Source of the DNA: Ministeria vibrans ATCC 50519 | Taxonomy: Eukaryota; Protista; Filasterea | Reading direction: 5' to 3' | Length of the DNA: 55,949 nt | Assembly (NCBI GenBank): GCA_943704425.1 | Contig: CALSCP010001523.1 | Location: 1 to 55,949 of the forward strand | Part shown: positions 1 to 55,949 of the stretch, one piece after another | Layout: each line of letters begins with the position of its first letter | Numbering within the stretch: the first letter of the stretch is position 1 | The notes under the pieces: model-generated | What the model was told of the DNA's origin: nothing | Database searches by the model: none | The model's input: only the letters and a program-made list of their open reading frames with translations | Program-made: the position numbers and the translations under genes

Positions 1-1021
1 TGTCGATCTTGACTACGCCAATGAGGTTAGATACTTAATGTATTGTGTTGGTGGCAGGCTTCTCTAACTGTTACTCCGGGGCTGGGTCACAACCCTAATA
101 AATAAACTTTTATTATTTTAACTTTTTATTAATATTTATTTAATTTTAATCAATTTTAATAAATTTTAATAAATTTTCTGTATATTACTCATTATTATCA
201 TATTCACCTTTCTTCTTATCGCTTACTCGGCTCGTATCATCTTCACTTTTTTTAAATTATTATATTTACTTTTTACATTCTCTTTAATTACATCCTTCCT
301 TTCATATCTTACTCTCTTATTTTAAAGACAATCCGTACTTTACTTTATTTACTTTACTTAATTAACTACTCTTAATTCTTTACACTTTGTAATAGACTTT
401 ATTTATAGCTTTTTTATAATTAATATTTCAATATAGTCAACTTCTTGTCAGTCTTTCGATTGTTAGATATTTACATTCTTTATGTACTCACTTTAAATGT
501 TACTTTTTCAATATCTTCCTTTAAACTCTAGTTAATATACTCTAGTCTCCATCTTCCATGTTTATCTATTAGGGCGCTTTTTTTCTTTTTTTTTGTTTCG
601 CTTTATCATATATTTCTTTTTGATATTATCTATCTTTAGACTTTCTTATATTTTCTTTATATATCTTTATATATATATTTATTCATATCTATCCATCTAA
701 TTTAGTTTAATAACTCACTTACGTATACTTTAAATACTACTATCATCTTCACTTTTTTCATATTAATATATATCTTTTCAATATCTTATTCATACACCAA
801 TCTATATATATATTAATACTACCTTTTATTTCCTATTTATCATATATTTATTAATCACTTATTATTAATAAATATATGTTAATAGTACTCTCTTTTGTTT
901 TTAATTAATACTATCAATAATTTTACTTATTTTTTCTTAATTAATCCCGGACATAGCTGGATTCGAACCTGCACCCTACATCTCGACAAGATGTTAATCT
1001 ACCTTTGATCTATATGTCCTT
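1..1021. repeat. Left terminal inverted repeat (1021 bp)
   Basis: Reverse complement of 54929-55949 with symmetric coordinates; match breaks at 1022/54928; one mismatch noticed (G17 vs A55933). Confidence 0.97.
948..1019 (-). tRNA. trnD: tRNA-Asp(GUC), TIR copy 1
   Basis: Acceptor GGACATA/TATGTCC; anticodon arm ACATC-TT GTC GA-GATGT; TTCGAAT T-loop. Confidence 0.95.
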
Positions 1022-8500: not shown

Positions 8501-8636
8501 CAAATACTCCTTGTTTGTTATAACTTATATATATTAAAATTATGAGATTTCACACTTGCCTTTTTTCTTTTCCTTCTATGTTTTTCTTCGAGTTTATATA
8601 ATTAAATAATTCAAACATCATTCTGTTGTTTTCCAT
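2520..8636 (-). CDS. Giant ORF, 2038 aa (orf2038); possible uS11-like N-terminus
   Basis: Frame read by hand: no TAA/TAG between ATG 8636 and TAG 2522-2520; joins five track fragments in one frame; K/E/I/N/W-rich. Confidence 0.85.
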
Positions 8637-8644
8637 CTTTTTTT

Positions 8645-9076
8645 TTATTCTAAAAGAAATCTTGTTTTACCAAGCTTTCTTTGTGTTTTTCCGTTAGTTC
8701 TTAATCTTTGACCACGTGTTGTGTAGCCTAACTTATGTCTTAATGATCTGTAATCACCTAGATTTAACATTTCTCTTACATCTTTTTTATATTTGTTAAA
8801 ACTTTTTTTAGATATATCTGAATTATATCTTTTTCATTTTTCTATCATCTTTTCATTTTCTTTGAATAATTTACCTTTCTTAAAATCTTGCTTATATTCA
8901 TTTCCATTTATACTTTTACTTACTCCTTGTCATTCTAAGAATTTATTAATTTGAGTTAATCCTACTCATTTTTTTATTAAAATTCGGCTATTTTCTAAGG
9001 TTCCTTTCTTTCAGTCTTTTAATAAGTTTATATTATTATTGTTAGCATTTGATTTATTTATTATTATTTTGTACAT
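8645..9076 (-). CDS. rps13: Ribosomal protein S13 (143 aa)
   Basis: C-terminal YRSLRHKLGYTTRGQRLRTNGKT matches uS13 [23 protein letters not shown]. Confidence 0.92.
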
Positions 9077-11669: not shown

Positions 11670-14417
11670 TTAATTTGTTTTGCTTTTATCCTTTTCTTTT
11701 CATTTATCTAATTTCCATCTTGTATCTGCCTGTTTTTGGATTTTTTCTATTCATTTTTTGTTATTGTTTAATTTTGAGATGTTATTCATTCTATCTATTT
11801 TTGTCTTTCTATCTAGAATTATTCATTTATTTAATGGGTTTAATTCTCCTTCTTTTCATGGTACTTCTTCTCAGAATTTAGGCATTTCTGGATGTTCTGT
11901 TTCTATTTCTATTGGGCCCATTCTTTTCTTTTCTACTTCACTTACATCACTTAGATTACTTTGGTCATCTTTAATTATAGAAAATGAACTTTCTAGACCA
12001 CCATGCCAATCTTTGTATCCGTACACTTTTTCTACTAACTTATCTAACTTTTCTCTTGGACCTTCTGTTATTCAGGTTTTAATTGATAGTATTTTTTTTA
12101 TGTAGTGAAGTGTCAGTCTTAGAGTTGTTTGTTTTCTTTTATCTATATACTCTATTTCTGGACCTAATCAATTAATATTCTTTTTTCATAAATAATCAAT
12201 CATTTTCTTTGTCTCTTCTGTACTTCTATTTAAAGTTATTTTTGGATCTATTCATTGTCATATTCCTTTTTTTAACTGTAAACTATTTACTACCTTTAAT
12301 TTTAATGTTTGTGTATTCTTTAATTTTTGTAATCAATGTAATTTATATAACTCTTTTGATCTTCGCTCTTTTACTTCTGCCATTCTTTTTTTTTCATTCA
12401 AAGTTACTTTTGGATTGAATGGCAGTATTACTATTTCTGAATATTTATTTACTGATTCTAAACTTGTCTCTATCTTTTCTCTTTCTCAATGGGCTTTTAA
12501 GTGCCTTTTAGTTTCTATTTCTGATCTAAATGGCTCACAGTCTTTCTTTCAATTTGTTTCTATTCCTGATCCAGACATTTCAATTCAATAGTCTTCATTA
12601 TCTCACTTGAAGAATGCTTCTTCTAATGATGGCTTTAGTCAAGTCATGTTAATGTTTCCTACTATTTTGGTTTTAACATGGTCCACTCTGTGGGGATTTT
12701 GGTTTATTCCCACTATTTCTTCTTGACCTTTTTCATTTAATTCAATTATGTTTTCATTAAAATATTTCTTTCTTATTTTTAGTTTGTCGTCTGGATCAAA
12801 TAGAATCTCATTTTCTACATTTTCATTTTTTATATATTCTGAAATTATAGAGACTTTTTTTAGATTTATTTTAGTAAATGGTTCTTCTTTATTTATACCT
12901 TTATCTTCAGCTTCGTATATACTGTTTTTTCATCTTTCTATATACTCTTCAGCATCTATATATACTCTTTTATTCATACCTTTATATTTTTTTCTATCAT
13001 CTATATCATCAAGTTTATTATCATTATCATCTTCATCTTTATCATCATCATATACTTCAATCAAATTATTATTATCATCATAATCATCATCATCATTATC
13101 ATCATCATTATCATTATCATCATCATTATCATTATCATCATCATTATCATTATCATCATCATTATCATCTTTATCATCATTATCATCATCATTATTATCT
13201 TGTTCGTATTCTTTTCCTTCTTTAATTGGAACCATTACTCATTTTATTATTTCTTTTAATTCTTGGCTTTTATCTTCTTCCTCTTCTTCCAATTTCAAGT
13301 TTTGTCTTTGCAAATCTTTTATATATATTATTTCGCAATTATCTATATATAAACTACTTCTATTTGGTCTATATTCTTTACCATAAACAAATGATAGTTT
13401 AGATTTATCTTGATTGTTAAAGAATCATTTTTGAATATCTTTAGTTTCTAATAGATATTCTGTTTCTTCGATTTCTCCTTTAGAATTTATATTATTTGAA
13501 ATAACATAATTTACATTTATTTCTATGTTTTGATCATTAGCAAAATTCATTATTTCTAATCAATTTATTCCTTTTGCTTCACCTTCTTCAAATATTATTG
13601 AGTTTTTGAATCTAACCCACAGTTCGCGATATAATAGGTTGTTTTCATTTAATATTTTTGTTATTCTATTTGTGTTTGGTAAAAGGCCATTTGTCTCGTA
13701 CAGAGTTATATTATAATTATCTATTATTAATTCTTTTCTTGAATTTAATTTTAAATTTATAATTAGATCTAATACTGTTGATCACTCTATTTCAAATGTT
13801 TGTCTTTCTATTGTCTGTCTTATTAATTCTTTTTTCTTATCGTTACTTCAATCAAAATTACATCATTCACTTTCCAATGGCTCTTTTCTATCTTCCTTGT
13901 TTTCGATATTTCAATAATCTATCATGTATTCTTCCTCTAGATCTTGGGCGCATTTATTACAATTTTTTTCATTTTTATTTCCTTTAATAATTGTTGTCAG
14001 TAATGATGACCAATATTTTCATGTTTCTAGTCTTTGTTTCCTTTTTATGTCTTCTACTCCTCACATCTCTTCAATTTCTAATAATGTAGTTATCTTTTCA
14101 TCCTTTTTTATTTTTATTTTGCTTATCTTTTCATCTGATCAAGTGTGTATCTTGTATATATCTGGGATCTTTTTTATATTTTCTATTAGAATATTTTCTA
14201 CATTCACTTTTTGTTCTTTGTAAATTACATTGTCTATTAGAACTTCTTTTACTTCGTTTTCTTTGTAAAAGTTTCGAAATGTTTCTTTTTTATTATTATT
14301 CAAATATTCCCCTATCATGCTTAAATATCAAATAAATATTATCCTTTTCTTTCGGTTGAGTTTAAGTCAATTAGCATCTCTTATTATTTTTCACTTTTCA
14401 ATTAGTTCTTTATTCAT
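11670..14417 (-). CDS. Giant ORF, 915 aa (orf915); uS2-like C-terminal region and internal Asp/Asn repeat
   Basis: Open under code 4 from ATG 14417 to TAA 11672-11670; YIDKRKQTTLRLTLHYIKKI and YKDWHGGLESSF resemble uS2 motifs. Confidence 0.85.
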
Positions 14418-14452
14418 TTTATTTATTTTATTTATTTTTAATTTAACTTACA

Positions 14453-19823: not shown

Positions 19824-19920
19824 TTTATCGTATCTTCGACTTTTCGATTTTACGATCATTTAGATTTTCAGTCGCAAGGTAATAATACTTTACTACTACC
19901 CCAGGATTCTTTATCTTCTT

Positions 19921-20175
19921 ATTTACTAGGGGCGCAATCTCTTTATTTGCCCACCTTTTTATCTATTTTAAGTATTTATTACTTATTTTATACCATAAGC
20001 AATTGTGGGCATCTTCTATTGACTCGCGCCCCTCTTAATATTTATTTATCTTTATTTTGATTTACTAGGGGCGCAATCTCTTTATTTGCCCACCTTTTTA
20101 TCTATTTTAAGTATTTATTACTTATTTTATACCATAAGCAATTGTGGGCATCTTCTATTTACTCGCGCCCCTCTT
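19921..20175 (-). repeat. GC-rich fold-back element, 2 tandem copies
   Basis: AGGGGCGCGA...TGCCCAC...GTGGGCA...TTGCGCCCCT on the minus strand, twice. Confidence 0.9.
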
Positions 20176-20202
20176 TATCTTTTTTATTATTTCTTTCTTT
20201 TT

Positions 20203-22778: not shown

Positions 22779-23135
22779 TTATTGTCATTCTAGACCACCT
22801 TTATTTCATTCATATATCAATCCGAATACCAGAATTAATAAGAATATTGAAATTACAAATCAAGAAGTTAGATCAATATATGCGAAAAATCTAGTTAGCG
22901 GAAGTAAAAATACTATTTCAAGATCAAATATTATAAATAAAATAGCAACCAAAACAAATTGAATATCAAACTTTTGTCTAGCATCTTCAAATGGCTCAAA
23001 TCCACATTCATATGGAGTTATTTTTGAATTATGAGTGTTTTGAAGAGATATTATAATTGATGCAAACATTAATATACTTGATAATAAACAACTTATTATT
23101 ATAGTAACTCAAATGTGTGAATATTGTATAAACAT
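22779..23135 (-). CDS. nad3: NADH dehydrogenase subunit 3 (118 aa)
   Basis: [29 protein letters not shown]. Confidence 0.97.
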
Positions 23136-23189
23136 TTATATCTTTATATCTTTATATCTTTATATCTTTATATCTTTATTTATCTATTT

Positions 23190-23298
23190 CGGGCGCAATC
23201 TCTTAATTTGCCCATCTTTATTGTGGATCTTTTATTTCCCACTTTTTTTATAAATTATAGCAAGTTATGGGCATCTTCTATTGACTCGCGCCCCTCTT
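23190..23298 (-). repeat. GC-rich fold-back element, 1 copy
   Basis: Same family as 19921-20175. Confidence 0.88.
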
Positions 23299-23396
23299 AA
23301 TCTTTATTTATATCTTTATTTATATTTATCTTTCTCTTAATCTTTATTTATATCTTTATTTATATTTATCTTTAAATTTAAATTTAAAGTATACAA

Positions 23397-25172: not shown

Positions 25173-25334
25173 TTTGAATTTAATTTAACTTTTTTTAATT
25201 CTTAAAGCTGTCACCGGCAAGTAGACACTTTAAGAAAGAAAAAGATTATTTAATTTTATATTCAAGGTGTTAAAATAACGACAAAATATTGTTTTCAAGA
25301 ATTCAATTTTTTACAGAAACTTTACGGAAAAAAT

Positions 25335-25356
25335 GTAACTATGCAAAGTTACTATC
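25335..25356 (-). promoter_or_regulatory. 22-bp palindromic motif, copy 2 (upstream of trnV-rns block)
   Basis: Exact copy; ~100 bp of downstream similarity to the copy at 40438. Confidence 0.55.
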
Positions 25357-25547
25357 AGAAATGTGGAAATTCATGCTAGTTTTCTTGCCACTTTTTGATA
25401 TTCTCTGAGCCGGTTTTACAATTAGTACTATTAAAAAGTTCCAGCAAATATAATGTTTTTTATAAAAGCAATCTTTCAAATCTTTCTTTTCAATGACTCA
25501 AGTCTCTTTGGTTTTCTTTTATTTTACAATTTTTATTTATTTTTAAA

Positions 25548-29079: not shown

Positions 29080-29650
29080 AGGGGCGCGAGTCAATAAAAG
29101 TTGCCCACAATAAATGATTATGAAAAAGATGATTATTCATTACAATAGGTCAAAAAAGGTGGGCAAATAAAGAGATTGCGCCCCTAGTAAATAAAGATAA
29201 AGATAAATAAAGATTAATAAATATTAAGAGGTTCGCGAATAAATAGAAGATAAAGAGGGGCGCGAATAAATAGAAGATGCCCACAATATCTTATGATATA
29301 AATAAGTGATAAATACTTAAAATAAATAAAAAAGGTGGGCAAATAAAGAGATTGCGCCCCTAGTAAATCAAGATAAAGATAAATAAAGATTAAGAGGGGC
29401 GCGAGTCAATAGAAGATGCCCATAACTTCCTATAATTCATAAAAAAAAGTGGGGAATAAAAGATCCACAATAAAGATGGGCAAATACAGAGATTGCGCCC
29501 CTAGTAAATAAAAATAAAGATAAATAAATATTAAGAGGGGCGCGAATAAATAGAAGATGCCCACAATATCTTTTGATGAAAAATAAATTATAAATACTGA
29601 CAATACGTGAAAAAAGGTGGGCAAAATAAAGAGATTGCGCCCCTAGTAAA
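29080..29650 (+). repeat. GC-rich fold-back element, 4 tandem copies
   Basis: Units begin near 29080, 29256, 29395 and 29536. Confidence 0.9.
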
Positions 29651-29895
29651 TCAAAATAAAGATAAAGATAAATAAAGATAAATATAAATAAAGATAAATA
29701 TAAATAAAGATAAATAAAGATTAAGATGGGGGCCCCTAATGACAGTAATCTATAAGAAAAACAAAGATTTGAGGAAAGGGTTAAATTAAATAAAGTGTAA
29801 AAGTGTTAAATGAGTCAAAGGGTAAAAACAAGGATTTCCTACAAAAGTTTATGTGAAAAAGTGGCAATCTAAACAGGGTAAAATGCAGTTTTTAT

Positions 29896-29917
29896 GATAG
29901 TAACTTTGCATAGTTAC
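29896..29917 (+). promoter_or_regulatory. 22-bp palindromic motif, copy 4 (upstream of cox2)
   Basis: GATAGTAACTTTGCATAGTTAC followed by ATTTTTCCGTTAAAGTT as in copy 5. Confidence 0.55.
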
Positions 29918-30003
29918 ATTTTTCCGTTAAAGTTCTAAAAAATAAAAGTAAAAAATGTTGGTCTAAATCGTGTGATAAAAACTGAATAAGAATAAAAAAA
30001 AAA

Positions 30004-33562: not shown

Positions 33563-33975
33563 TAAGAGGGGCGCGAGTAAATAGAAGATGCCCATAAGTG
33601 GCTATTGCTATAATTGATAAAAAAAAGTGGGGAGTAAAAGATCCACAATAAAGATGGGCAAATACAGAGGTTGCGCCCCTAGTAAATAAAAATAAAGATA
33701 AATAAATATTAAGAAGGGCGCGAGTAAATAGAAGATGCCCATAAGTTGCTATTGCTATAATTGATAAAAAAAAGTGGGGAGTAAAAGATCCACAATAAAG
33801 ATGGGCAAATACAGAGGTTGCGCCCCTAGTAAATAAAAATAAAGATAAATAAATATTAAGAAGGGCGCGAGTCAATAGAAGATGCCCACAATATCTTTTG
33901 ATGAAAAATAAGTTATAAATACTGAAAATACGTGAAAAAAGGTGGGCAAATAAAGAGATTGCGCCCCTAGTAAAT
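33563..33975 (+). repeat. GC-rich fold-back element, 3 tandem copies
   Basis: Units near 33566, 33715 and 33862. Confidence 0.9.
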
Positions 33976-34064: not shown

Positions 34065-34125
34065 AAATTTTAGATTAAAAGATCTAAAATAAAAAGGAAA
34101 ATGTCAAATAAAAATAATAATAAAA

Positions 34126-37100
34126 ATGTCAAATAAAGATTGAAAAAATAATAATGAAAATGAAAGTGGTTACTGACTAAGTGAAAGCATAAAGGGGAAT
34201 CAAGAATTAAATTTAAATAAAAAGCACTGCGTAATAAGTAGTGTAGATAGTATTAATAGTATTGATAGTATTAAAAAAGGTGAAAATCACCATATAGATT
34301 TAAAAAGTAAAGAATGAATCCTTCCTCTTGAAAAAGAGATGACAATTGCTACAAGTAAATTTTGAGATTTTGATAATTGAAAAAATAAATTAAAGTTGAC
34401 AAGAAATTTAGATTATAGAAATTATGAAAATGAAAATAATTGAGACATTGATCAATTAAAGATAAAAAGACCATATTATCAAAAATATTTGAATGAAATA
34501 TCAAGAGGATTAGAACCAAAGAAAAATAAATATATTTATAAATTTGAGCATAACACATATTATAATAATAAGTATAATAGTCTAATTCCAGATATAAAAA
34601 ATCGTCATTATGATTTTGACAATAAAAAATGAAAATATTGGAATGAAATATATAATGATAAAAAGAGAAAAGACCCAGAAAGTGTAAATAAAATAATAGA
34701 GTTGATATATTTAAATTTTTATGAAAAAAACTATATAACTCTAACAGGTAAAAATGATAATTGGCCATTAATATATGGATCAAATTTATTAGAGACAAGT
34801 GAAAGATTAAATTTAAATTTAAAAAAACCGAGTTATTTAAAGATTTGAGAAGAAAGTAAAGGAGAAAATATAAATAAGTTAAATTTGAATTGGAATTTGA
34901 ATAATATTGAAATAATAAATGAAACAAAACTAAATTGAATAAATATAATATTAAATTGAGAAAATGCAGCTTGAAAAAAAAGAGAAGCAGAATCTCAATT
35001 AAAATATTGAAGAATGTTATTATCAAATAAAAAAAAGAAGTTAAAAGAAATAATAAAAGGAAAGGATAGAGAAAAAATCAAGATATTATTAAAAGGTGAT
35101 TTGTTATTGAAAAATATTTGAATAAATATAGGAGAATGAAAAAGAAGAAGTGAAAAGAAAATCTATAATTCTCGAGAATTAATAAAAAGAGAAGAAAAAA
35201 ATACAAAATACATTGGAAAAGAAAAACAAGATAGAATAAAAAATCGCCGTCTTATTTGACAAAGAAATGTAATTAAGTATTATAGAGAATCATTGAAACT
35301 TCATATAAATGATATTAAGGGAGAGTATATAGAACAAAAGTTAATTAAAATAAGGGAAGAATGTAATAAGTGAGAGGAATTACTAAAAAAAAGAAAAGAA
35401 GTATTTTACAGTTGTAAAAAAGCAATGGTAAGAATGAATAATCTAGATTGAGAACTAAAGAAGGAAATCGAAATTAAAATGGAAAGATTACATAATTGGT
35501 ATTCAAAATATGTTTCATTTTCTTGAATGAGCAGAAATCACTATTTAAAAATGAAAAAGATAGAAAATCCAGATTTTAAAGAAGAAATGAAGGATCATTC
35601 AAAGATCATTGAGTTAATAGTGGATCTAAGAGACGACCTGGTAAACTGACCTATGCCTTATCTTCTAAATAAAAGATGAAAGGAAGAAGACAAAGTAAAC
35701 CAAGAAATACAACATAGAGCAGAGTGAAACCATATAAGATTGTTAAAAGCAAGAGAAGCAGAAATTGAAATAAAGATAGAAAGGAAAGATATAGATAAAG
35801 ATCTAATTAAAGTAGAAAGTAAAATAATAAATTTAATTAAAAGACCAGAAGATTGAAATGAACTGAAAGAGGAGGTAACATGAGAATGATTAAATAAAAA
35901 ATTAGAAAAATATATAAAATTGAATACTTGAATAAATATGGCAAATAAATGAGTAGGTTTAAAAAGAGATGAAAAGAAGAATAAAAAGTTATTTGAAAAA
36001 AAAGTGGGTGATTGATTAATAAAAAGAGATAATAAAATTTATAAAATAGTAGAAAATATAAAACTATTAGAGAAATTAATATTTGAACAAGAACTAAAGG
36101 AAAAAGAAAGACAAAGAGATTTAAGAATAACTGGACATTATAAAACATTAACAGAAAGGGAAAGACGGTTATCATTCGAAAACAGTAAATTAAAGAAATA
36201 TGATTTACTGAGTGAAGAAGGACTGACACCAGCTAAAACAGGAATGTTTGAGTTATTTGGTTCTGTAGGAATACAAAAATTCTCAAAAAGAATGGCAATT
36301 AAAAAATTAGAATATAATGTAGATAAATTCGGTCCTTCTAAAAAATGAATAGAAACTCCAAGAACTATAAGAAAATTAGAAGTAGAAATAGAGAAAGAGA
36401 AAGAGAAAGTATTAGAAGACAAAATGGTAAAAGGTCAAGTGTTAAAAGTAACTCCAGGTTTAATTAAAGATTCTAAAGATTGAAGTGAATGAGAAAAATC
36501 GGAAGAAAAGGAGCAATCAAAAATAATAGAAGAGATAGTAGAAAGAGGAGAAAAGGGGCACAATTTACCAATTGACTTAATAAATAGTGTGATTAAAAAT
36601 TATGGTAAAAAGGAAGGAGAGAAGAAAAAAATTAAAGTTGAAACAAGGAACTGAAAGATCACAGGAATGTTTTTTGACTCAACATGGTTATGATGATCAA
36701 ATTTAAAAAAAATGAATATGGATAAGAATTGATGATGAAGTCGGGTAGAGACTAAAAAAATGAAGAAGACTTCAAATAAAGGAATTCTAAATTCTTTATT
36801 AGATTTTAAAAATGAAATAAAGAAAGAAGGAAATCATAAATTGGCTGAATATTATAGACATGAAGAACAAGATTACCTAAATTCAGAAGAATATAAATCT
36901 ACAAATGCAAATCCATATAAACCATTTTCTTATTATAAAAAAAAGATTGATCCTAAATTAAAAAATAGGAAAACACTGATTGACTTAAAAGAAAACAGAG
37001 AAAAATTTAGAAAAATAAATTTAAGATTAATTAAGAAGCTTGTTATAACAACAAATGATTATTTGAAATACAAACGAGAAAGAATTGAAAAATGGAAGGA

Positions 37101-38175
37101 ATCAAAATCAATTTTAACTACAAGATATAAAAATCTTGATTTATATAAAAAGAAGTTAAGAATAATAACTCTTGCATATAAAGGTCAATATAAAAAATTA
37201 AAAGGTAGAAAAAAGAGATCATGGACGGTATCATCAAACTTTCATATATTTGATATATATAAATGAAGAGTAGGTCAAAATGAAAATCAAAAATGAATAA
37301 TTAAAAATAAATATAATAAATGATTTTCAAAGCAAAATTGAACAGAATGATCATATAATAATAAATTTATAAAGACAAATAAATACATTAAAACAACAGA
37401 GATATATAAATCTCTAGACCAAATCTCAAAGATAAACAAGAGAGATAAGGTAAAAATCTGAGAGATAGAAGAGCGAAGTTTTAAGGAGATAAAATGAAGC
37501 TTTGAATGTAAGAATAGAATAGAGAAGGTCGAAAATCTAAAACTAAAAGAGGTAGCAGATAAAAGTTACCTTTGAGCGAATGTTGATGGAAAGGATGAAG
37601 AGGATGGAAAGGATAAATGAAAGAAAAGCTTATTATTTAATTATAGAGAAGCAAAAGGTGAAAATGGTCCAGATTTAAAAAGACTGGAAAGACTTTGAAT
37701 CCAAAGATTAATTAATATTCGGGTAGAGAAAGAATTTCATTTTAAAAAGATAATTAAATGAATGGAGAATGAAAATAATAGTTTCTGAATTCTAATTAGT
37801 CCAGAAATATATAATTTGAATGGTATAAATTGTTCTAAATGAAAAAAGGAAGAAATAATAAAGATAAGAAAAGCTTGAAAAAACTATATACAGTATAGTG
37901 AAGAAGAAGAAGTAATACAAGAACATCGTTTGACAAGATCAATACCATCAAATTACAATAAAGAACTAAAATTAGTAAAGACTCGACCTATTAAAAACTT
38001 CCCTAATTTAAAAGAAGACCAAGGATTGACTCGTAAATGAATAATGAATCCAAGATTTGAACATTATGGAGTACATGATAAAACAATCGAGGAAAAAACT
38101 TGATTAAAATGATTAAAGGAAAGACCAAGAATGAATAAAATGAATAGTAAAAATGAGCATACTATCGAAAAATAA
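34126..38175 (+). CDS. Giant ORF, 1349 aa (orf1349), unknown function
   Basis: Read by hand: open under code 4 from ATG 34126 to TAA 38173-38175; overlaps cob by 23 bp. Confidence 0.85.
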
Positions 38176-39810: not shown

Positions 39811-39859
39811 TATAAATAATAAATAGAAGATAAAGAGGTTCACGAATAAATACAAGATT

Positions 39860-40205
39860 AAGAGGGGCGCGAGTAAAGAAAAGATGCCCACAATATCTTA
39901 TGATATAAAATAAGTGATAAATACTTAAAATAAATAAAAAGGTGGGCAAATAAAGAGATTGCGCCCCTAGTAAATAAAAATAAAGATAAATAAAGATAAA
40001 TAAATATTAATAAATATTAAGAGGTTCGCGAATAAATAGAAGATAAATAAATATTAATAAATATTAAGAGGTTCGCGAATAAATAGAAGATAAAGAGGGG
40101 CGCGAATAAATAGAAGATGCCCACAATATCTTATGATATAAAATAAGTGATAAATACTTAAAATAAATAAAAAGGTGGGCAAATAAAGAGATTGCGCCCC
40201 AAGTA
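39860..40205 (+). repeat. GC-rich fold-back element, 2 copies plus partial units
   Basis: Units near 39864 and 40096; partial GAGGTTCGCGAATAAATAGAAG units between them. Confidence 0.9.
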
Positions 40206-40437
40206 AATAAAGATAAAGAAATAATAAAGAAATGATAAAGAAATATAAATAGAAATGCGTGAAAGAAAAAAGTAATAAATATGAAAGAGTAGCTAGTGAG
40301 AAAAAGAGTAGTTTTAAAGAAGTGAAAAAAGAATAAAAGTAAAATTTGCTGAACATTTGTGATAGTGAAATCAAGAAAAGCGGGTGATAAAGAATACAAA
40401 AAGTGGAAAGATAAAGGGGTACAATTGTAACTTTTCT

Positions 40438-40459
40438 GATAGTAACTTTGCATAGTTAC
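40438..40459 (+). promoter_or_regulatory. 22-bp palindromic motif, copy 5 (upstream of trnT-trnM-orf883 block)
   Basis: Exact copy, extended similarity to copy 2. Confidence 0.55.
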
Positions 40460-40629
40460 ATTTTTCCGTTAAAGTTTTAATTAAAAAATGAATTCTTGAA
40501 ACAAATATTTTGTCGTTATTTAAGCACTATGAATATAAAAATAAAAGATTAATTATATAAATGATATATTAAATAATAATATATGTATTAATATATTAAT
40601 ATATATTAATATAATTAGATTGAAGAAAA

Positions 40630-40791: not shown

Positions 40792-40810
40792 ATATTAAAT
40801 AATAAAAAGG

Positions 40811-43462
40811 ATGAATAAAGAAACAAGAAAAGGAATAATGATGCTAATGGATATTAAAAAAGAAAAGCCAAAGGGAATAAGAAATTTAAAAGAAGTAAGA
40901 TATGAAAGTGAAAAAGCCTCAATAGAATTAGAAAAGACAGGAATAAAAGTCTCAAGTTATTATGCTATTAAGGATTATGATTTAGTAACATATGTATACA
41001 GTATAATAGATAACATAAATGTAAGCAGTACTAAAATAGGAAGTAGTTTAGAGCATGAAAAATGGCTATGAACAAAGATCCAAGATATAAAGAGAGAGTT
41101 AATATGAGTTGAAAGCTGATTAAAAACAGGAGAAATAACAACAATAAACAAAGAAGGAGAAGAGTTGAAAGAAGAAGAGCTAAAAGAAAGAGAAGAAGAA
41201 ATATTAACTAAGACAGAATTAAAAATGACAGAACACAAAAAGTATATATTAGAAAATATGGTTGATGGTCGAGGTATAAATACAGACAATATTGAATATC
41301 AAATAGATATGTCAAATTATGATAAAAAATTTAATTTAAAATATATATTAGGAAATGAAATAGGAGATGATATAATGTGAGGAAGTAAAATGTCGCATAT
41401 TCTAGTAGAATTACAAGAAAAGATATTAAAAAAAGAAAAAGAAATAACATTCACAGAAAAAAATGTAGAAAGTAAATCAGAAAGAGAAGAAGGGAAATAC
41501 GTAATAGATGGTTATGAAATTACAGATATAGAGAGAAAAGTAGATAATAGACTTGGAGAGATAATATTAATAGTAAATATAAGATTAATTGCACTACTGC
41601 AAGAGGTGTGAAAGATGAAAATGAATTTTAAGAAATGGGTAAGTAAGACAAAGACAGAAGAAGAAAACAAAAAATTACAACAAAAATTTTTTATAATGTT
41701 AACAAATAAATTAAGATGAGAATTTGGCTCAATAAATAAAGATATAAATAAAGGAACATTAATAGGTTTTAAAGAAAAAGCATGAGAAATAATCCCGGAA
41801 TTGATAGAATACTATGAATCAAGATATTTAGAATTTTTAAATTCAAAATCATGAAAAGTATCATATTGATTCGATGCATTAATGTCAGAACAAGATTACT
41901 TACATATAAGAGAATTAGAAGAATGAAAAAAGGAAGCGCCTAAAGTAGGAATTGGAGAACCAAGCATAGGAACAATAATAGGAGAAAAGGAAATAAGTAA
42001 AATAAATAAAATAAATAAAATAAAGAAAGAAGAGGATAAGGAAGAGATAAAAGAAGAAGAAAAGATAGAAATAAAAGAAGAAGAAGAAACAGAAGAAGAA
42101 AAAGAAAAAAGAAAGGAAAAAGAAGTGAAAGAAGCATTTGAAAGAATATGAATAAAATGAAAAGAAGACTGTAAAGAAACAGAGATAAACGTAAATAATG
42201 AAATTAAAGACTGAGAAATAAATAAAGAATGAAATGACTCAGTCCATTGATATAAAGAAGCAGAAAGGCTATATAATAAAAGAGAAGAAAAGAATAAAAA
42301 GCATAAAAAATGAAATGATGCAAGATTAACAAGAGAAGTATTAAATTATAATAAGAGACTAGGAAAGATAGAAAATATATCTAAAGAAAGAATAGAAATA
42401 AAAGGAAAATATAATGGCTCATTAGAGCGTCAAAGAAGTGGATACAAAAGATATGATGAAGAAAAGTGAAAAGAAGAATTTTTCACAGAAGAAGAGAAAG
42501 ATCTATTGAGACCAAGTATAAGAACAAGACTTAAAAATAATAAAGGATTATTATCACGAAAATTAGAGAAGCTAATAATAAGAGTAGAGAAAGAAACAGT
42601 ACATTTAAGAAGAAATGAAAAATGGATAGAAATGAAACCAGAAATTCAAAAAGATTGATTATTCATAGACCCAATTATAAAAGAATATAAAGAAGTGAGA
42701 ATGAAGAATGAGAAGGCAAGATATATAAAGAAAGAAAAACGAGAAGATCAATTAGGATATGACAAATCAATAAACCATGGATATGATAAAATAATGCTAC
42801 TTAAAGAAGAAAGGGAATATGTATATGATGGACGTAAAAAATGAAACTGATTAAAATTCCAAGGGATAATGGTAAGACGTAAAACAAACATGGGAGGTCA
42901 CGATCAAAAGCGAGGTATGGTAAGAGTAAAAAAAGTAGTAGAATCATTGAGTACAGGATTAGACATAACAAATAGGACAATAATAAGAAGAGAAGGGGAA
43001 AATAATAAATGAAAAATAAAAGGAAAGAAATGAGAAAAGATAGAATCAGAAAAAGACTATTTTAAGAGAGAATCAGAAGCGTACATTAGAAGTAAAAGTG
43101 TAGAATGAATAAATAAAAAAAGAGTAGGAGAAAATGTATATGAAAGTGAAGAATACTTAAAAGGATTATTTAAATTTCTAAGTAAATTCGAAACAGTAGA
43201 ACAGAGAGTAGGAAGAAATGCAAACTTCAAACCTTACTTATGAATAAGAAGAGAGCTAACAGAAGGTACAAAGAAAAGTTTATTCATAAGACATAGTAAA
43301 GAGTGGTATGAAGTAAGAGATTCAGATTGACTTCAATACTCAAATTTCAATGGAAAAATAATTAAAGAAATAAATTACAAGACAGATGAAATAGATAAGA
43401 TGTCAGACTGATTTAAGAGTTATATAATAAATTTAAATAAATTTTTAAAAGAGTGAAAATAA
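40811..43462 (+). CDS. Giant ORF, 883 aa (orf883); uS7-like C-terminal ~200 aa
   Basis: Open under code 4; KFQGIMV, ETVEQRVGRNANFKP and KTDEIDKMSDWFKSY occur in uS7 order. Confidence 0.85.
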
Positions 43463-45764: not shown

Positions 45765-45809
45765 AAAAGAAATAAAAAAGAAATAAAAAAGAAATAAAAA
45801 AGAAATAAG

Positions 45810-48800
45810 ATGCCTAGAAAAGTGGAAATAGTACCATTCATAAAATTATGAAAATTCAACAAAAAAACGAAAAGAAAGGAGGTAAACAGGGAACTGTTAA
45901 ATAAATATTATATAGAATTATTAAAAAATAAAAAAAAAGAAGAAATAACTAAAATTATTACGGAAATAAGTTCAAAAGAAAATCTAAATAAAATAGAAAT
46001 GATGGAAATAGATAACATTGACTACATTCTGGAAGAAAAAAGAGATATAACAGAAATAAAGACAGAGACAATACTAGATTTAATAGTAACATTTTCATAT
46101 TCAAATAAAGAAAATATAGAAAATAAGATTGAATGAAAAAGTTACAATTTTAAGTTATATAAACAAGAAAGTATAGTAACTGGAATGATAAATATCTCAA
46201 AAATCTATAAAGAAGGAGAAAGTCTGTATGAAGAAATAAAAGAAGAAATAAAAATAAATTTTAAGAATAAAATTGATCAAATAAAATTAATAAATGAATT
46301 AATAAAAAAAGAAATAAAATTCAATATAAATTATATAATATTATACAACGAAGAAGAATTAGAATTACTAACTCAAGATATAAGTCTAAGTCATAGAGAA
46401 ATAAGTAGTTTATTGTACAAAAGAGAAAATGAAAACGAAATAAAAGGCGATGAAATAAAAACCTTTATAGATTATCAAAATAAACAACATAAAGTAAAAA
46501 TCTGAGAAGAAAACTCAAAGAAAAAATTAGTAAGATTAACACAAAAAATATATAAAGAAAAGATAAAAATAGGACAACTGCACATATCTCAATTAGAGAT
46601 ATCAATTTCAACCAAATTAGAAAAGTGAAGTAAAATTGATAATTATCTTGAAGGAAAAGAAGGAATAGAATTTAAAACAGAAGAAGAAAATAAAAAGAAA
46701 ATAAAAGAATCGCTAAAAGAAAATAAGATAATGCACAATGATAATATTAAAAACATGAATGAAAAATGTAAATTAGAAAGAGATCTAAATGGACTAAACA
46801 AAAAGCATTGATTTTTAAAAAGCTCATATAAAAAACCAAGAACAATAATATATGCAATATTGACAGAAGATCAAATAAGAAAAAGAATAAGAAACTGAAT
46901 AATAGAAAAGACAAAAGAAAATAAAAAAATAAATTTAAATTGAATAAAACTAGAATTAAAGAGAGTCTGAAAAAATAAAATATACTGATATGAAAAAGAA
47001 GAGAAATGAATAATAATAGGAATAAAATCAAATTGAGATATAGAATGAGGAATCCAAGAGACAACAGGAACAGGAAGATTATCAACACATTGAATTAAAT
47101 CACCAAGATTACTAGAAACAATAGAAGAAAAGGAAGACGAAACAAATAAAAAGAAGATAAAAGAGATAAACATGTATAAAAAATGAAAATGAATAATAAA
47201 AGCACAAATAGATATTTTAAATAAATTAAAAAAAATAATAAAGTTAAAAAAAGATAATAAAACAGATAGAATAAAAAAGATAGTTGAGTGAATAAAGGAA
47301 AAAGAAGAAGAACTAGAAAATGTAATAGAAGACGAAAATGAAGATTGAATAAGAGAATGAGAAATAAAAAAAGAAGAATACAAACTAAAAGAGAATCAAA
47401 TAATAATTAATGAAAAGATAGGAATAATAAAAAGAGAAATAAATAAAAAAAGAAATTTTGTAAATTATAAGATAATAAATATAATAAAAGAATTAAATAA
47501 GAATGGATGAATAATAAAAGAAGAAATAAAAAAAATAGAAAAAAAAGAAAGAGAAATAAAAATAAAATTAAATGAAATAAACTGAATAAATAATTTCTCA
47601 AGATTTAATAATTTTGAATTAGATCTAACATACATAAACAGAGAAATTAAAAATGGAATAACAGATAGCTCTAATGTAATAAATAAACTGACAGGTGGAT
47701 TAAAAGACCCAGCTCTGATTGGAAAAGAATACAAAAGAGAAGAGCAAGAAATGATCCAAAAAGGAATGGCAAGGTTAGGAAAAATATATTATAATCCAAG
47801 AAAAGAAAATCAAGCAGGATCGCATTTTAATAACGAAAATGTAAGACCAATAATAAATAAATTGATAAAAGATTGATTAGAGGATGAAAATGAAATAGAA
47901 AAAACAAATATAGTATCAAAGTGAGTAACAGGAAGTATAAAACTAAAAGGAATCTCATTACTTCCTCTTAGAGAGAACGATCTTAAATTCGAGGTAATAC
48001 CATATAGTAATGATCCAGGTAAATATTGAGAACACAATCCAATAGATTCACCACACAGATTAATTAGATGAGAAAGAGAGTTCAACACAGAGAATGAGAG
48101 CAATACAATAAGTAAAAAGAATGACGAAGTAAAGGAAGTAAAGGAGAAAAAAGAAAACAAACTATTAAACAAGATAAATGATATAAATAGGAAAGAAATA
48201 ATAAATAATATATATGAGTATGATATAAAAGCACTGTACACATCAATAATAAAAAACAATATAATAGCTATTCCTAAATTACATAATTTACAAGAAATAA
48301 TCGATCAGAAAGAATCATTTATGAGTAAAGATCTAATTAATCTAATAGAAACAAAAAAGATAGAAGAAGAAAGCTGATTAGTAAAAGAAAATAAATGATT
48401 GAATACTGATATAGAAGAAAAAGAGTGAATTAAAAATTGAATAGAATGAAAGAAAAAAGAAAATTGAATATACATATTAAAGAAAATAAATCAAAAAGAG
48501 TCATCACATTTAATAAAATGAATGCTAAAAGAAAAGAACTGAAAACAAAAGATAAGAGCAAAATGGTTAATAGATTGAAGGAAAAACGAAGAAAAGATGA
48601 TAGGAATAAGACAAAAAGATAGGAAAAGAAAGTTAGACAATAAGATAAGAGCATTATGAAGAGAATTAAGAAAAAAGCAAGATTTAATCTGAAACACAGA
48701 AACATACAAAATAATAGTGGAGGAAATAATAAATAAAGAGCTAAATCTAGAAGGAATAAAAGGAAAAGAGGTAGAAGATAAGGAAGAAAAGATAGAAAAT

Positions 48801-50387
48801 AAAGAAGAAGAGGTAATAGAAAATAAGGAAGAAGAGGTAATAGAAAATAAGGAAGAAGAGGTAATAGAAAAAGTAAAAAAAAGAAATAAAAAAAAAGAAA
48901 TGAAAGAAAAAGAAATAGAAGAAATGAAGGAATTAAAAGGAAAAAGAAGAGAAAATAAAATATGAGAAAATAGTAAAGAAGAAATTAACTGATATAATTA
49001 CAGAAGAGAATGAATAATTGAAACAATTAAAAAATCATTAAATGAAGATTGAATAAAGTATAAAGAATTAAGTAATAAAGAAAGAAAGAAAGCAAAATTC
49101 ATAAAAAGCCATGGTAGAATATTAAGAATACACAAGATAAGACAATCAACGAAAAGAGCAAGAAAAAATTTAGACATTTTTCCAAATTGAAATTATACAC
49201 AAAATTATTCAGAAAGCAAAATAAAGGAAAGTAAAAGAAAGGAAAATAGAAATGTAAAATGAGATTTAGCAGAAAAATCATTACTAGAATTAAAAAAAGC
49301 AGGAATGCTTTGAGAAAAATGAGAATGAGGATTGGAAGAACTAGAAGTGGAAGGAGAAGAAGTAGAAAAAAAATCTACAAAATACAAAGATAAAACATTT
49401 AAAATGAGAAACCAATTAGGCCTCCAATATTTAAAAGAAACACAGAACACAGTATCAAAGAAGCACTGAACAACTAACGATAGATACAGAAAAAAAGTAC
49501 ATAGAGTAGTATTATTTTTAGATAGACCAGATAAATATATTATAATAAGAGATTCAAGCATTGTGATTGGTACATATTTAGAAGAAACAAATCCAAGATT
49601 AGGATTAAGTCCAAATGCGTACGCAAGAAGACCAAGAGCATATTATGGTGAAGAAGTAAACAATTTAGTTCTAAATCATGGATTAATATTCAAATGTATA
49701 TTAGTGATTAACTTAGAAGAAAAGTATTTATTAGAACGAAAAGAAATTTTATCAATGATTTTATGAAGAATAAATGAAAAATCAGAAATAAAAAGCTCAA
49801 CAGGAAAATTATATGCAAATTCATATATAGGACTAAAGAGTATTAGAAAATCACTAAAATCTAATAAAACAAATAACAAACTATTAAATACTTCTAAAGA
49901 AGATAATTGAATCTTTAAAGATAATGAAAATAAGTATGTAGATGTTAAATTTAAAAATGACTCAGAAAAAAGTTATCATGATTTATTAACAACTAAAGAA
50001 AGTCATAAAGTAATGTCAGAAAGTCTAAAAGATCATTGATTAGAAGAATTTGAAAAAATCCATTCAATTGAAGGACTAGCTGTAAAATCATTAGCTAAAA
50101 AAAAGATAGCAGAGATCTGAGACAATGAAATAAGAAAAAATACACTAAATAAAAGCAAACAAGAATTATTTTATTCAGATACAGATAGTTTATTTGTAAA
50201 TGGAAGAATATCAAATGCTAACCTGGCTTGACAAATAAAGGATAGAAGCAAGGTAAAAAGACAAATAAACTATGAAAGAGATCAAAAAGAATTTATAAAT
50301 AAAACAGAGTTTATAAATAAAGAGATAAAAAGAGAGGGGATGATGATTAATTACAATTTTAATCTTAACTATAAAAAGGAAAATTAA
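45810..50387 (+). CDS. dpoB: Divergent, expanded family-B DNA polymerase, probably protein-primed (1525 aa)
   Basis: Open under code 4; motif A YEYDIKALYTS (48213-48245), motif B KLYANSYIG (49806-49832), motif C LFYSDTDSLF (50166-50195) in the correct order. Confidence 0.8.
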
Positions 50388-50476: not shown

Positions 50477-50548
50477 TCTTTGGTAGCTTAAAGGTAAAGC
50501 ATATGACTGTTAATCATAGAAGTGTAGGTTCAAGTCCTATCCAGAGAG
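50477..50548 (+). tRNA. trnN: tRNA-Asn(GUU)
   Basis: TATGA-CT GTT AA-TCATA. Confidence 0.93.
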
Positions 50549-50557
50549 AAAAAAGAA

Positions 50558-52879
50558 ATGATAAAAAATAAAATAGATAAAATAATAATAAATTCAGAAA
50601 AAGCATATTTAACATCAATCGGTAAATTCAAAAATGAACTATCAGAGTTAAATCCAGAGATTAAATTAAAAATGATCTCAGAAATATGTAATAGAACTGA
50701 AAAGAGATTAACAATGTATCCTAGTAGAGCCTATTATGAAGGAACTAAAGAAGGGATCGATTATTGAGAGAAAGGTAATTTTCTAAATATTAAAAATTAT
50801 ATATTATATTCAAAAAATTATAATTGAATAGATTCAAAAAGAATTAAAGAAATGCAAAATAAAGAATGAACAGGATCAATAAATCAAAGAATAATTTATG
50901 ATGTTTGTTCAATAATAAAAATAGAATATAAAAATGAAATAGAAGAAATCTCAGTAAGAATAGAGATAGAAGATTTAAAAAACCTCTGAAAAAGAAGTAA
51001 ATCAAATTTCGAAAATGCTAAAGAATTATATTTAAAATTCTGAGACGAAAAGTTAGAAGAATTAGAATATTTAGAAATAGAAAACAAATACAATGTAAGT
51101 CAATACAATATAAAAGAAGAAGAAAATGAAATAACAGAAAAAGAATGAAATAAAATAAATATAATATTAAATAAAAAGATTAAAGAGATATTTAACCTAG
51201 ATATAAAAGATTATGAAGAAGAAATTAGAAGAAAAGAAATAACAAATAAAATGTGAAGTTTAGAAAAATGATCAATAAACAACCTATTAAGAATCTGAGA
51301 AGAAATGTGAAAAGAAAATAAAAAATTAAATAAAAGACTATATGAAAAATATGCATGAATTACATTTAAAGAAATAGATATTTCAAAAAATTATAAATTC
51401 ACAACATCAGGTACTATAGAAGAAAATCATTCATTATTAAATTGAAATAAAGATTTATGATTCAAAACTAAAGAATATAAGCAATGAGAAAAATATAAAG
51501 AAATTATAGAAGGAATTAAAGATATAATAAAAAACAAGAAGATAAATGAAGAAACATGAAATAAATATTTTAAGAATAGAATATATGAAATAGAATGATG
51601 AAGTAAAAAAAAGATAACAAAAGAAGAAATAGAAGACAATAAAAAATGAAAATTAATTTTAGAAATAATTAAATGATTAAAATGAGGAAAAAAAGACTTA
51701 AAAAATTATTTAAGAATAGAAAAAAATAAGATACCAATTATAAGACACATAAAAATAAAAGAGATAAAAGAAAGTTACTTAGAATTACTAGAAGCTCAAA
51801 GATTTTTAAATACAAGTGATTCACAATCAAAGTTAGAAGAAAAATTAGAGAAAGATGTAATACCAAACGAAAAAAGACAAAGAAACGTATTTAAAGAGAT
51901 AAGTTGAGGTAAAAAAAAAGGAGAGAGGGTAAAAGAAATAATAGAAGAAGAGGAAGAAGAAGAAGAAGAAAGAGAAAGATTAATAGAATGAAAAAACAAA
52001 AAAGGAGGTTGATGACAAGAAGAAAAGGAAGAAATAGAAAATGTAAGATGAACAGAAGAAAATGCACTAATAAATAAATTAAAAACAGAGAAATGGTATG
52101 GAATAAAGATCTATTTAGAAAAAAGGAAAAAATTAGAAAAAATAATTAAAAAAATAATAATACATCCAGTAATAAAGATAGGAGAAAACAAGCTAGAAAC
52201 GGAAATATGAACTCAAATATATTTAATAGGAATGGAAAACAAATATTGAAAAGACAAAAGAAAAGAAGAATTAATAAAATGAAAAAATGATAAAAAAAAT
52301 AATAAAAAATTAAAGGAAAGATTATTAATAGAAATAGAAGAATTAAAATTAAAAATAAAAAAAGAAATAAATCTAGAATTAAAAAGTAAAGTAAATAAAT
52401 CAAATAGAACAAATAATAAAGTAAAATTAGAATTAGAAAGTAGTAAAAAATACATTAGAGATTGAAATAAAAAGATAAATAATAAAGAGGAAATAAAAGA
52501 AAATAAAGATAAAGAAAAGGTAAAGAAAGATTACATATACTATTTATTTAATGCAGAACCAATAGATGCATACAAATTAAAGGAAAAAGAACCAAAATTA
52601 GAGAGTATAGAAAAATATATATCATGAAAAAGAACAAATAAACTAGAAAAAGAGACAAATAAAATAGTAGGAGAATACAAAAGAAAATTAGAAGAAAAAC
52701 TAGAAGAATTAAAAGAAATAAATAAAAAAGAAAATGAAGAATTAAATAGAATAATAAAATGACAAGAGGAAGAAGATCTAAAGAAGAGTCAATATAAAAG
52801 ATTAAAATTAGGCCTAAAAATGAGGAAAAACAATTATAAACAAATAAATAAAGAAAGAAAGATAAAGATACGTAAATAA
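50558..52879 (+). CDS. Giant ORF, 773 aa (orf773); possible uS10-like N-terminus
   Basis: Open under code 4 to TAA 52877-52879; TEKRLTMYPS...FLNI aligns with uS10 spacing. Confidence 0.85.
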
Positions 52880-54928: not shown

Positions 54929-55949
54929 AAGGACATATAGATCAAAGGTAGATTAACATCTTGTCGAGATGTAGGGTGCAGGTTCGAATCCAGCTATGTC
55001 CGGGATTAATTAAGAAAAAATAAGTAAAATTATTGATAGTATTAATTAAAAACAAAAGAGAGTACTATTAACATATATTTATTAATAATAAGTGATTAAT
55101 AAATATATGATAAATAGGAAATAAAAGGTAGTATTAATATATATATAGATTGGTGTATGAATAAGATATTGAAAAGATATATATTAATATGAAAAAAGTG
55201 AAGATGATAGTAGTATTTAAAGTATACGTAAGTGAGTTATTAAACTAAATTAGATGGATAGATATGAATAAATATATATATAAAGATATATAAAGAAAAT
55301 ATAAGAAAGTCTAAAGATAGATAATATCAAAAAGAAATATATGATAAAGCGAAACAAAAAAAAAGAAAAAAAGCGCCCTAATAGATAAACATGGAAGATG
55401 GAGACTAGAGTATATTAACTAGAGTTTAAAGGAAGATATTGAAAAAGTAACATTTAAAGTGAGTACATAAAGAATGTAAATATCTAACAATCGAAAGACT
55501 GACAAGAAGTTGACTATATTGAAATATTAATTATAAAAAAGCTATAAATAAAGTCTATTACAAAGTGTAAAGAATTAAGAGTAGTTAATTAAGTAAAGTA
55601 AATAAAGTAAAGTACGGATTGTCTTTAAAATAAGAGAGTAAGATATGAAAGGAAGGATGTAATTAAAGAGAATGTAAAAAGTAAATATAATAATTTAAAA
55701 AAAGTGAAGATGATACGAGCCGAGTAAGCGATAAGAAGAAAGGTGAATATGATAATAATGAGTAATATACAGAAAATTTATTAAAATTTATTAAAATTGA
55801 TTAAAATTAAATAAATATTAATAAAAAGTTAAAATAATAAAAGTTTATTTATTAGGGTTGTGACCCAGCCCCGGAGTAACAGTTAGAGAAGCCTGCCACC
55901 AACACAATACATTAAGTATCTAACCTCATTGGAGTAGTCAAGATCGACA
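54929..55949. repeat. Right terminal inverted repeat (1021 bp)
   Basis: Reverse complement of 1-1021. Confidence 0.97.
54931..55002 (+). tRNA. trnD: tRNA-Asp(GUC), TIR copy 2
   Basis: Identical to the copy at 948-1019. Confidence 0.95.

Follow-up and report, generated by a model that had tools for sequence, protein, structure and literature searches.

Does the linear mitochondrial chromosome of Ministeria vibrans, a protist relative of animals, encode a DNA polymerase of its own? The stretch analysed here (the window) is one whole contig of 55,949 bp from the 29.7-Mb M. vibrans assembly, and is the whole linear mitochondrial DNA (mtDNA) of this species. Publications describe the M. vibrans mtDNA as linear (PMC7194472) and list its genes without a dpo or polB (PMC7027106, PMC7194472), and our literature search pairing Ministeria with polB or dpo found nothing. 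The question is raised by orf1529, a giant open reading frame (ORF) that a sequence-only reading had taken for a chromosomally integrated, inflated family-B DNA polymerase (PolB) of the protein-primed type. Judged by its motifs, orf1529 very probably descends from a PolB. Our preferred reading, to which we assign a probability of roughly 0.55, is that it derives from the polB of a plasmid, is still catalytic and plausibly acts at the chromosome's ends.

All of the motif strings quoted in the sequence-only reading are found in orf1529 in the quoted order, with the catalytic aspartates present. Motif A reads YDIKALYT (aa 808-815) and keeps Asp809, the leucine and the tyrosine at the steric-gate position (Tyr814), with Ser replaced by Ala and Pro by Thr relative to the consensus Dx2SLYP. 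Motif B reads KLYANSYIG (aa 1337-1345), in which Lys1337, Asn1341, Ser1342 and Gly1345 are kept and Tyr is replaced by Ile relative to Kx3NSxYG, and lies 124 aa ahead of the motif C aspartate. Motif C, YSDTDS (aa 1459-1464), agrees with the PolB signature YxDTDS including its two catalytic aspartates. Two further strings that had been likened to segments of linear-plasmid polymerases are also present, namely YYGEEV...HGLIF before motif B (aa 1282-1297) and GLAVKSLAK before motif C (aa 1426-1434), the latter within a Tx2GR-like block that ranks third of 1,515 positions (6.0 bits) and is weak taken alone. The window has 230 code-4 ORFs in its six frames, 35,032 aa in all. In this set, Y.DTD and K...NS..G have a single occurrence apiece, in orf1529 in either case, and one of the two occurrences of D..[SAG][LM]Y is likewise in orf1529; the strict consensus forms D..S[LM]YP and NS.YG are absent from the set.

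Support for the motifs was calculated with two separately built sets of matrices, one from 13 diverse phage protein-primed PolBs (pPolB) and one from eight RNA/DNA-primed PolBs (rPolB) including the nuclear Pol alpha of M. vibrans, both against a background rich in lysine (K) and glutamate (E). Motif C scores 25.9 bits (pPolB) and 28.2 bits (rPolB), with exact tail probabilities of 1e-9 and 2e-10 per position, and its chance of occurring anywhere in the six frames of the window is ~1e-4 and 2e-5, respectively. Motifs A (8.2 bits pPolB, 5.8 bits rPolB) and B (8.2 and 10.8 bits) each rank first among all positions of orf1529 under both matrix sets and are colinear. A colinear chain of ten blocks scores 76.9 as compared to 31.9+-5.7 in 1,000 global shuffles, and the chain minus block C still scores 51.0 as compared to 31.1+-5.6, a value reached in 2 of 1,000 global shuffles. 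Given motif C, the combination of A and B has p<3e-4 under global shuffles, and p ~0.016-0.02 (pPolB matrices) or ~0.04-0.05 (rPolB matrices) under shuffles that preserve local composition; the latter give p=0.01-0.03 for the rest of the chain and p=0.006-0.012 for the polymerase blocks. We drew 82 windows, each 330 aa long, from the six giant ORFs of this mtDNA and their reversals and compared them by hhalign with both PolB profiles; on either profile the best window was the C-terminal one of orf1529 (P=0.009 and 0.003). The combined chance of finding motif C with A and B in order and spacing is ~1e-6, before allowing for the many motifs that might have been recognised. At the level of motifs, the PolB constellation in orf1529 is real and beyond chance.

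The evidence also supports orf1529 as a real ORF under selection in the main mitochondrial chromosome. Read in genetic code 4, positions 45798-50384 contain 50 TGA codons, one TGG and no TAA or TAG, where regional base composition predicts TAA/TAG at 8.5% of codons (P of no stop ~1e-59), and the remaining two forward frames have 243 and 119 stops across the same region. TGA encodes Trp in this mtDNA, with 14 TGA and one TGG in cox1. The gene was missing from the supplied ORF track, as had been remarked, because translation table 11 breaks the plus strand of this region into fragments of at most 106 aa. Its G+C content, third-position composition, codon choice and strand skew are like those of neighbouring genes, and no second copy of orf1529 or free plasmid was found in the assembly. 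The protein is rich in lysine (17%), glutamate (13%), isoleucine (12%) and asparagine (9%), and is laid out as islands of ordinary composition separated by low-complexity stretches. Six runs recorded as RNA contain part of the orf1529 stretch, one of them a polyA RNA-seq run holding half of its words, and these matches lend weak support to transcription. In marine metatranscriptome and metagenome runs, which come from several studies, 10-50% of the orf1529 31-mers are present; M. vibrans or a very close relative is present in these environmental samples, which are a possible source of natural variants.

According to our preferred reading, the polB of a linear invertron plasmid would have been taken up by a linear mtDNA bearing terminal inverted repeats (TIRs), and long residence there would have given it the base composition and codon habits of the host. 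The TIRs of the M. vibrans mtDNA do extend to both ends of the molecule, as expected of an invertron. Padding rich in lysine and glutamate, as seen in five other giant ORFs, would then have inflated the gene, and it is presumably because of drift and padding that only the core motifs (A, B, C and perhaps Tx2GR) are recognisable. The protein may still bind deoxynucleoside triphosphates and metal and polymerise DNA, because a 4.6-kb frame has stayed open and all three carboxylates, the motif-B lysine and the motif-A tyrosine survive amid otherwise unrecognisable sequence. A plausible job would be to fill in or prime the termini of this linear molecule, with the nuclear-encoded Pol gamma performing bulk replication, and the N-terminal 400-800 aa of orf1529 could hold a hypothetical terminal-protein domain. 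We infer plasmid origin, protein priming, activity and the role at the ends alike.

Several results weigh against this reading, foremost that no profile method is significant for orf1529. In scans of its TGA-free pieces, the only Pfam match is to PF00136 on the motif-C piece (11.5 bits, E=0.13, cut-off 23), and PF03175, the profile against which the sequence-only reading had proposed to check the gene, has no match on the pieces or, in a six-frame read-through search of the assembly, anywhere in the window. The motif-C piece is also the only one matched by PHROGs, the remaining pieces having no match in either database, and a phmmer search of three motif pieces against the PDB found nothing. 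Two hidden Markov models of our own, one from 120 phi29-like polymerases (close relatives only) and one from the 13 diverse phage pPolBs, were not significant on orf1529, with negative scores or scores of ~1-5 bits. The hhalign probability is only 4-11% and motif B is placed differently between hhalign runs. True PolBs score 16-32 bits for motif A and 11-30 bits for motif B on the matrices of the other class, as compared to 5.8-10.8 bits for A and B of orf1529. The island of ordinary composition preceding motif B (aa 1225-1322) has no homologue among 1.84e9 representatives or in a set of 5.8e9 proteins except its own 67-aa fragment; an AlphaFold2 model of the 98-aa island was unusable (predicted local distance difference test score 43.8). 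FHA-like leads for the same island from the ESM Atlas (0.88) fell under the recognition level and were discarded. Candidate exonuclease motifs, WDIEW (aa 413, ExoI) and FNNFELDLTYIN (aa 603, ExoII), rank 61 and 4 under the pPolB matrices, and under the rPolB matrices the ExoII candidate ranks third and the ExoI candidate falls outside the top five. No Yx3D motif was found in the right place of orf1529, and exonuclease motifs are statistically unsupported by either matrix set. Lastly, the nucleus encodes a Pol gamma (contig C2647:54329-57091; PF00476; E=2e-119 to human POLG in the PDB), so orf1529 is not needed as the main replicase and a polymerase role for it is not required.

An alternative that we consider unlikely is that orf1529 derives from a PolB and is no longer a polymerase, being either an exapted relic with a DNA-binding, end-binding or structural role or a frame kept open for another reason, in which the catalytic motifs would be the last to decay. 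The substitutions in motifs A and B leave both badly degraded (6-11 bits as compared to at least 11-16 in true PolBs), more than 500 aa of low-complexity sequence with a live tandem repeat are inserted within the catalytic domain, the exonuclease motifs are unrecognisable and Pol gamma is present. A relic does not readily account for the intact state of the three carboxylates, the motif-B lysine and the motif-A tyrosine in a protein that has otherwise drifted past detection. Nor is padding peculiar to this gene. Giant code-4 ORFs rich in K, E, I and N number six in this mtDNA including orf1529, with TGA making up 3-4% of their codons, and together occupy ~40% of it; the five others are similarly padded, yet open over 783-2,048 codons, and because they too have been kept open, padding alone is no argument for lost function. 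The inflation described in the sequence-only reading is evident in the 528 aa between motifs A and B, which include a live 24-nt tandem repeat encoding ENKEEEVI units, and this repeat suggests that padding grows by slippage. Part of the same spacer (48755-48988) is 71% like positions 41974-42207 in another giant ORF (orf887); paralogy of orf1529 with the other giant ORFs was not found.

An improbable explanation is that an orphan or inflated ribosomal-protein ORF contains PolB-like strings by chance. The mtDNA has five other giant K/E-rich ORFs of no known function, several of which the sequence-only reading had assigned to ribosomal proteins, HMMER gives nothing significant for orf1529, motifs A and B together reach only p ~0.02-0.05 under the conservative null, and a reader has many known motifs available to match. 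However, motif C alone would be expected by chance at ~1e-4 to 2e-5 over six frames, its joint occurrence with A and B is rarer still, and the three loose patterns, found one, one and two times in the whole window, are all present in orf1529, which lacks paralogy to the other giant ORFs. A ribosomal-protein identity for orf1529 was rejected, there being no ribosomal-protein match in Pfam on any of its pieces and no Pfam match on those of the other giant ORFs, and the uS3 family being found only in the nucleus; the labels uS7, uS2, uS10 and rps11 given earlier to other giant ORFs are likewise without confirmation, their TGA-free pieces having no match in Pfam.

On the protein-primed type claimed in the sequence-only reading, our searches speak neither for nor against. 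The two PolB classes give equal block scores, TPR1 and TPR2 regions are not recognisable in the orf1529 sequence, and the weak class signals conflict, with Pfam pointing to PF00136 and PHROGs to phrog_1907 (E=0.015 on the motif-C piece, with nothing polymerase-unrelated of note besides), which we checked to be the phi29/PRD1/GIL16 protein-primed family. To our knowledge, all polBs so far reported from mtDNAs or mitochondrial plasmids are protein-primed. Prior knowledge of these polymerases and of TIR-bearing linear molecules favours a protein-primed type for orf1529 (PMC5633667, PMC11358620). The least probable of the alternatives is that orf1529 came from an RNA/DNA-primed PolB of viral or nuclear type, as could be suggested by its somewhat classical motif flanks (ALYTSII vs SLYPSII, KLYANS vs KLTANS and DTDSLFV vs DTDSMFV, in comparison with the species' own nuclear Pol alpha and the C1655 PolB), the slightly higher scores of B and C on the rPolB matrices, a higher hhalign score against the rPolB profile (32.4) than the pPolB profile (27.8) and a Pfam match to PF00136 and not PF03175, but these class differences do not exceed noise, motif A has its higher score on the pPolB matrices, the PHROGs match is to a protein-primed family, the polBs known from mtDNAs and mitochondrial plasmids are all protein-primed (PMC5633667, PMC11358620) and the chromosome has the TIR architecture that accompanies protein priming.

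A polB within a linear, TIR-bearing mtDNA has precedents in Medusozoa, in the demosponge Acanthella (ORF1535) and in fungi (PMC5633667, PMC11358620). The M. vibrans gene is likely to be a further example, unusual in its decay, its padding and its host, a protist relative of animals. The polB of medusozoan cnidarians, which occurs with ORF314, is similarly a family-B polymerase ORF in a TIR-bearing linear mtDNA and has been read as a captured linear plasmid; it has significant similarity to PolB and adjoins the chromosome end with its partner ORF (PMC5633667), whereas orf1529 is not recognised by Pfam, is 2-3x longer, has cox3 and nad1 between itself and the TIR and has no identified partner ORF. 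Acanthella acuta ORF1535 closely resembles orf1529 in length (1,535 vs 1,529 codons) and is likewise part of a linear mtDNA whose termini are inverted repeats; it is plasmid-derived, and InterPro finds in it first a DNA polymerase domain and then one of an RNA polymerase (PMC11358620). By contrast, the PolB motifs of orf1529 are in its C-terminal half (aa 809-1463), its length is due to K/E-rich padding and it has no T7-type RNA polymerase motif, such motifs being found in none of the ORFs of the window. With invertron and phi29/PRD1-type protein-primed PolBs (PF03175, phrog_1907), orf1529 shares the order A, B, Tx2GR-like, C and a TIR-bearing molecule, and its YSDTDS variant is shared with Clostridium phage CPS1. 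It differs from them in the A-B distance (528 aa vs ~131 in phi29) and in having no PF03175 match, no recognisable TPR1/TPR2 and no supported exonuclease motifs. Remnants of dpo/polB in fungal, plant and algal mtDNAs are plasmid-derived and, like orf1529, reside in the mitochondrial chromosome; stops usually break them into fragments that can still be aligned, whereas orf1529 is fully open over 4.6 kb and almost unalignable.

It is possible, and we put it forward tentatively, that in this single-celled relative of animals a hugely padded PolB is still active in the linear mtDNA and primes or completes replication of its inverted-repeat ends. If true, non-animal Holozoa would have their first such case, and a polB would be added to a published gene list without one. 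Plasmid capture and linearisation, a pattern seen in jellyfish and one sponge, would then be known from the protist relatives of animals too, and plasmid capture would explain why the M. vibrans mtDNA is linear with inverted-repeat ends. The catalytic core of a PolB would have to tolerate a low-complexity insert of more than 500 aa between motifs A and B, making orf1529 an extreme natural example of polymerase drift and padding with the catalytic residues kept. In addition, standard annotation would be shown to overlook genes of this kind in fast-evolving organelle genomes through the combination of a wrong genetic code and profile thresholds.

Table 1. Location of orf1529, its PolB-like blocks and other features in the 55,949-bp M. 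vibrans mtDNA (residue numbers refer to orf1529).
Feature	Position	Strand	Description
orf1529	45798..50387	+	code-4 ORF, 1,529 codons; first ATG 45810, stop codon 50385-50387
Motif A block	48213..48272	+	aa 806-825, YEYDIKALYTSIIKNNIIAI; rank 1 of 1,510 positions with both matrix sets; hhalign P=0.03
Spacer A-B	48246..49806	+	~520-528 aa, K/E-rich, contains the 24-nt tandem repeat
Tandem repeat in A-B spacer	48772-48871		24-nt unit, 4.3 copies, 91% matches; encodes ENKEEEVI repeats
Pre-B island	49470..49763	+	aa 1225-1322, ordinary composition, includes YYGEEV...HGLIF
Motif B block	49800..49847	+	aa 1335-1350, TGKLYANSYIGLKSIR; rank 1 of 1,514 positions with both matrix sets
Tx2GR-like block	50061..50105	+	aa 1422-1436, HSIEGLAVKSLAKKK, includes GLAVKSLAK; between B and C
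Motif C block	50169..50207	+	aa 1458-1470, FYSDTDSLFVNGR; Asp1461 and Asp1463 intact
Further giant ORF	2523-8666	-
Further giant ORF	11673-14447	-
Further giant ORF	34093-38172	+
Further giant ORF	40799-43459	+
Further giant ORF	50528-52876	+
Left TIR	1..1021		1,021 nt, 100% complementary to 54929-55949; contains trnD
Right TIR	54929..55949		reaches the contig end, as the left TIR does
Dispersed repeats	19900-20200, 23130-23320, 25250-25400, 29150-29930, 33620-33940, 39850-40550		inverted orientation between the two arms

The chromosome that houses orf1529 encodes bacterial-type large- and small-subunit rRNAs, 25 tRNAs including trnW(UCA), and atp6, atp9, cob, cox1-3, nad genes and several ribosomal proteins. 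Its atp8 and atp6 genes, of 206 and 247 codons, agree with the published M. vibrans table, as do its size (55.9 kb) and linear form (PMC7027106, PMC7194472). Left-half genes are carried by the minus strand and right-half genes by the plus strand, the G+C content is 22-31% and the sign of the strand skews flips near the middle. The mid-arm position attributed to orf1529 is roughly right, with atp8 upstream and trnN, orf783, trnL, cox3 and nad1 between it and the right TIR. No further copy of the TIR was found elsewhere in the assembly. As trnD(GUC) is inside the TIR it is present in two copies (948-1019 and 54931-55002), and atp9 starts 42 nt within the left TIR boundary. Exact copies of two short mtDNA segments are present on nuclear contigs, one of 53 nt from orf1529 (48662-48714, on C760:16789-16841) and one of 35 nt from the TIR (630-664, on C1577:2838-2872), and are either tiny nuclear mitochondrial DNA segments or chance matches of simple sequence. 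The central non-coding stretches of the mtDNA contain a family of dispersed repeats, with units of ~65-150 nt that are 71-95% alike, which are candidate promoters, origins or mobile elements.

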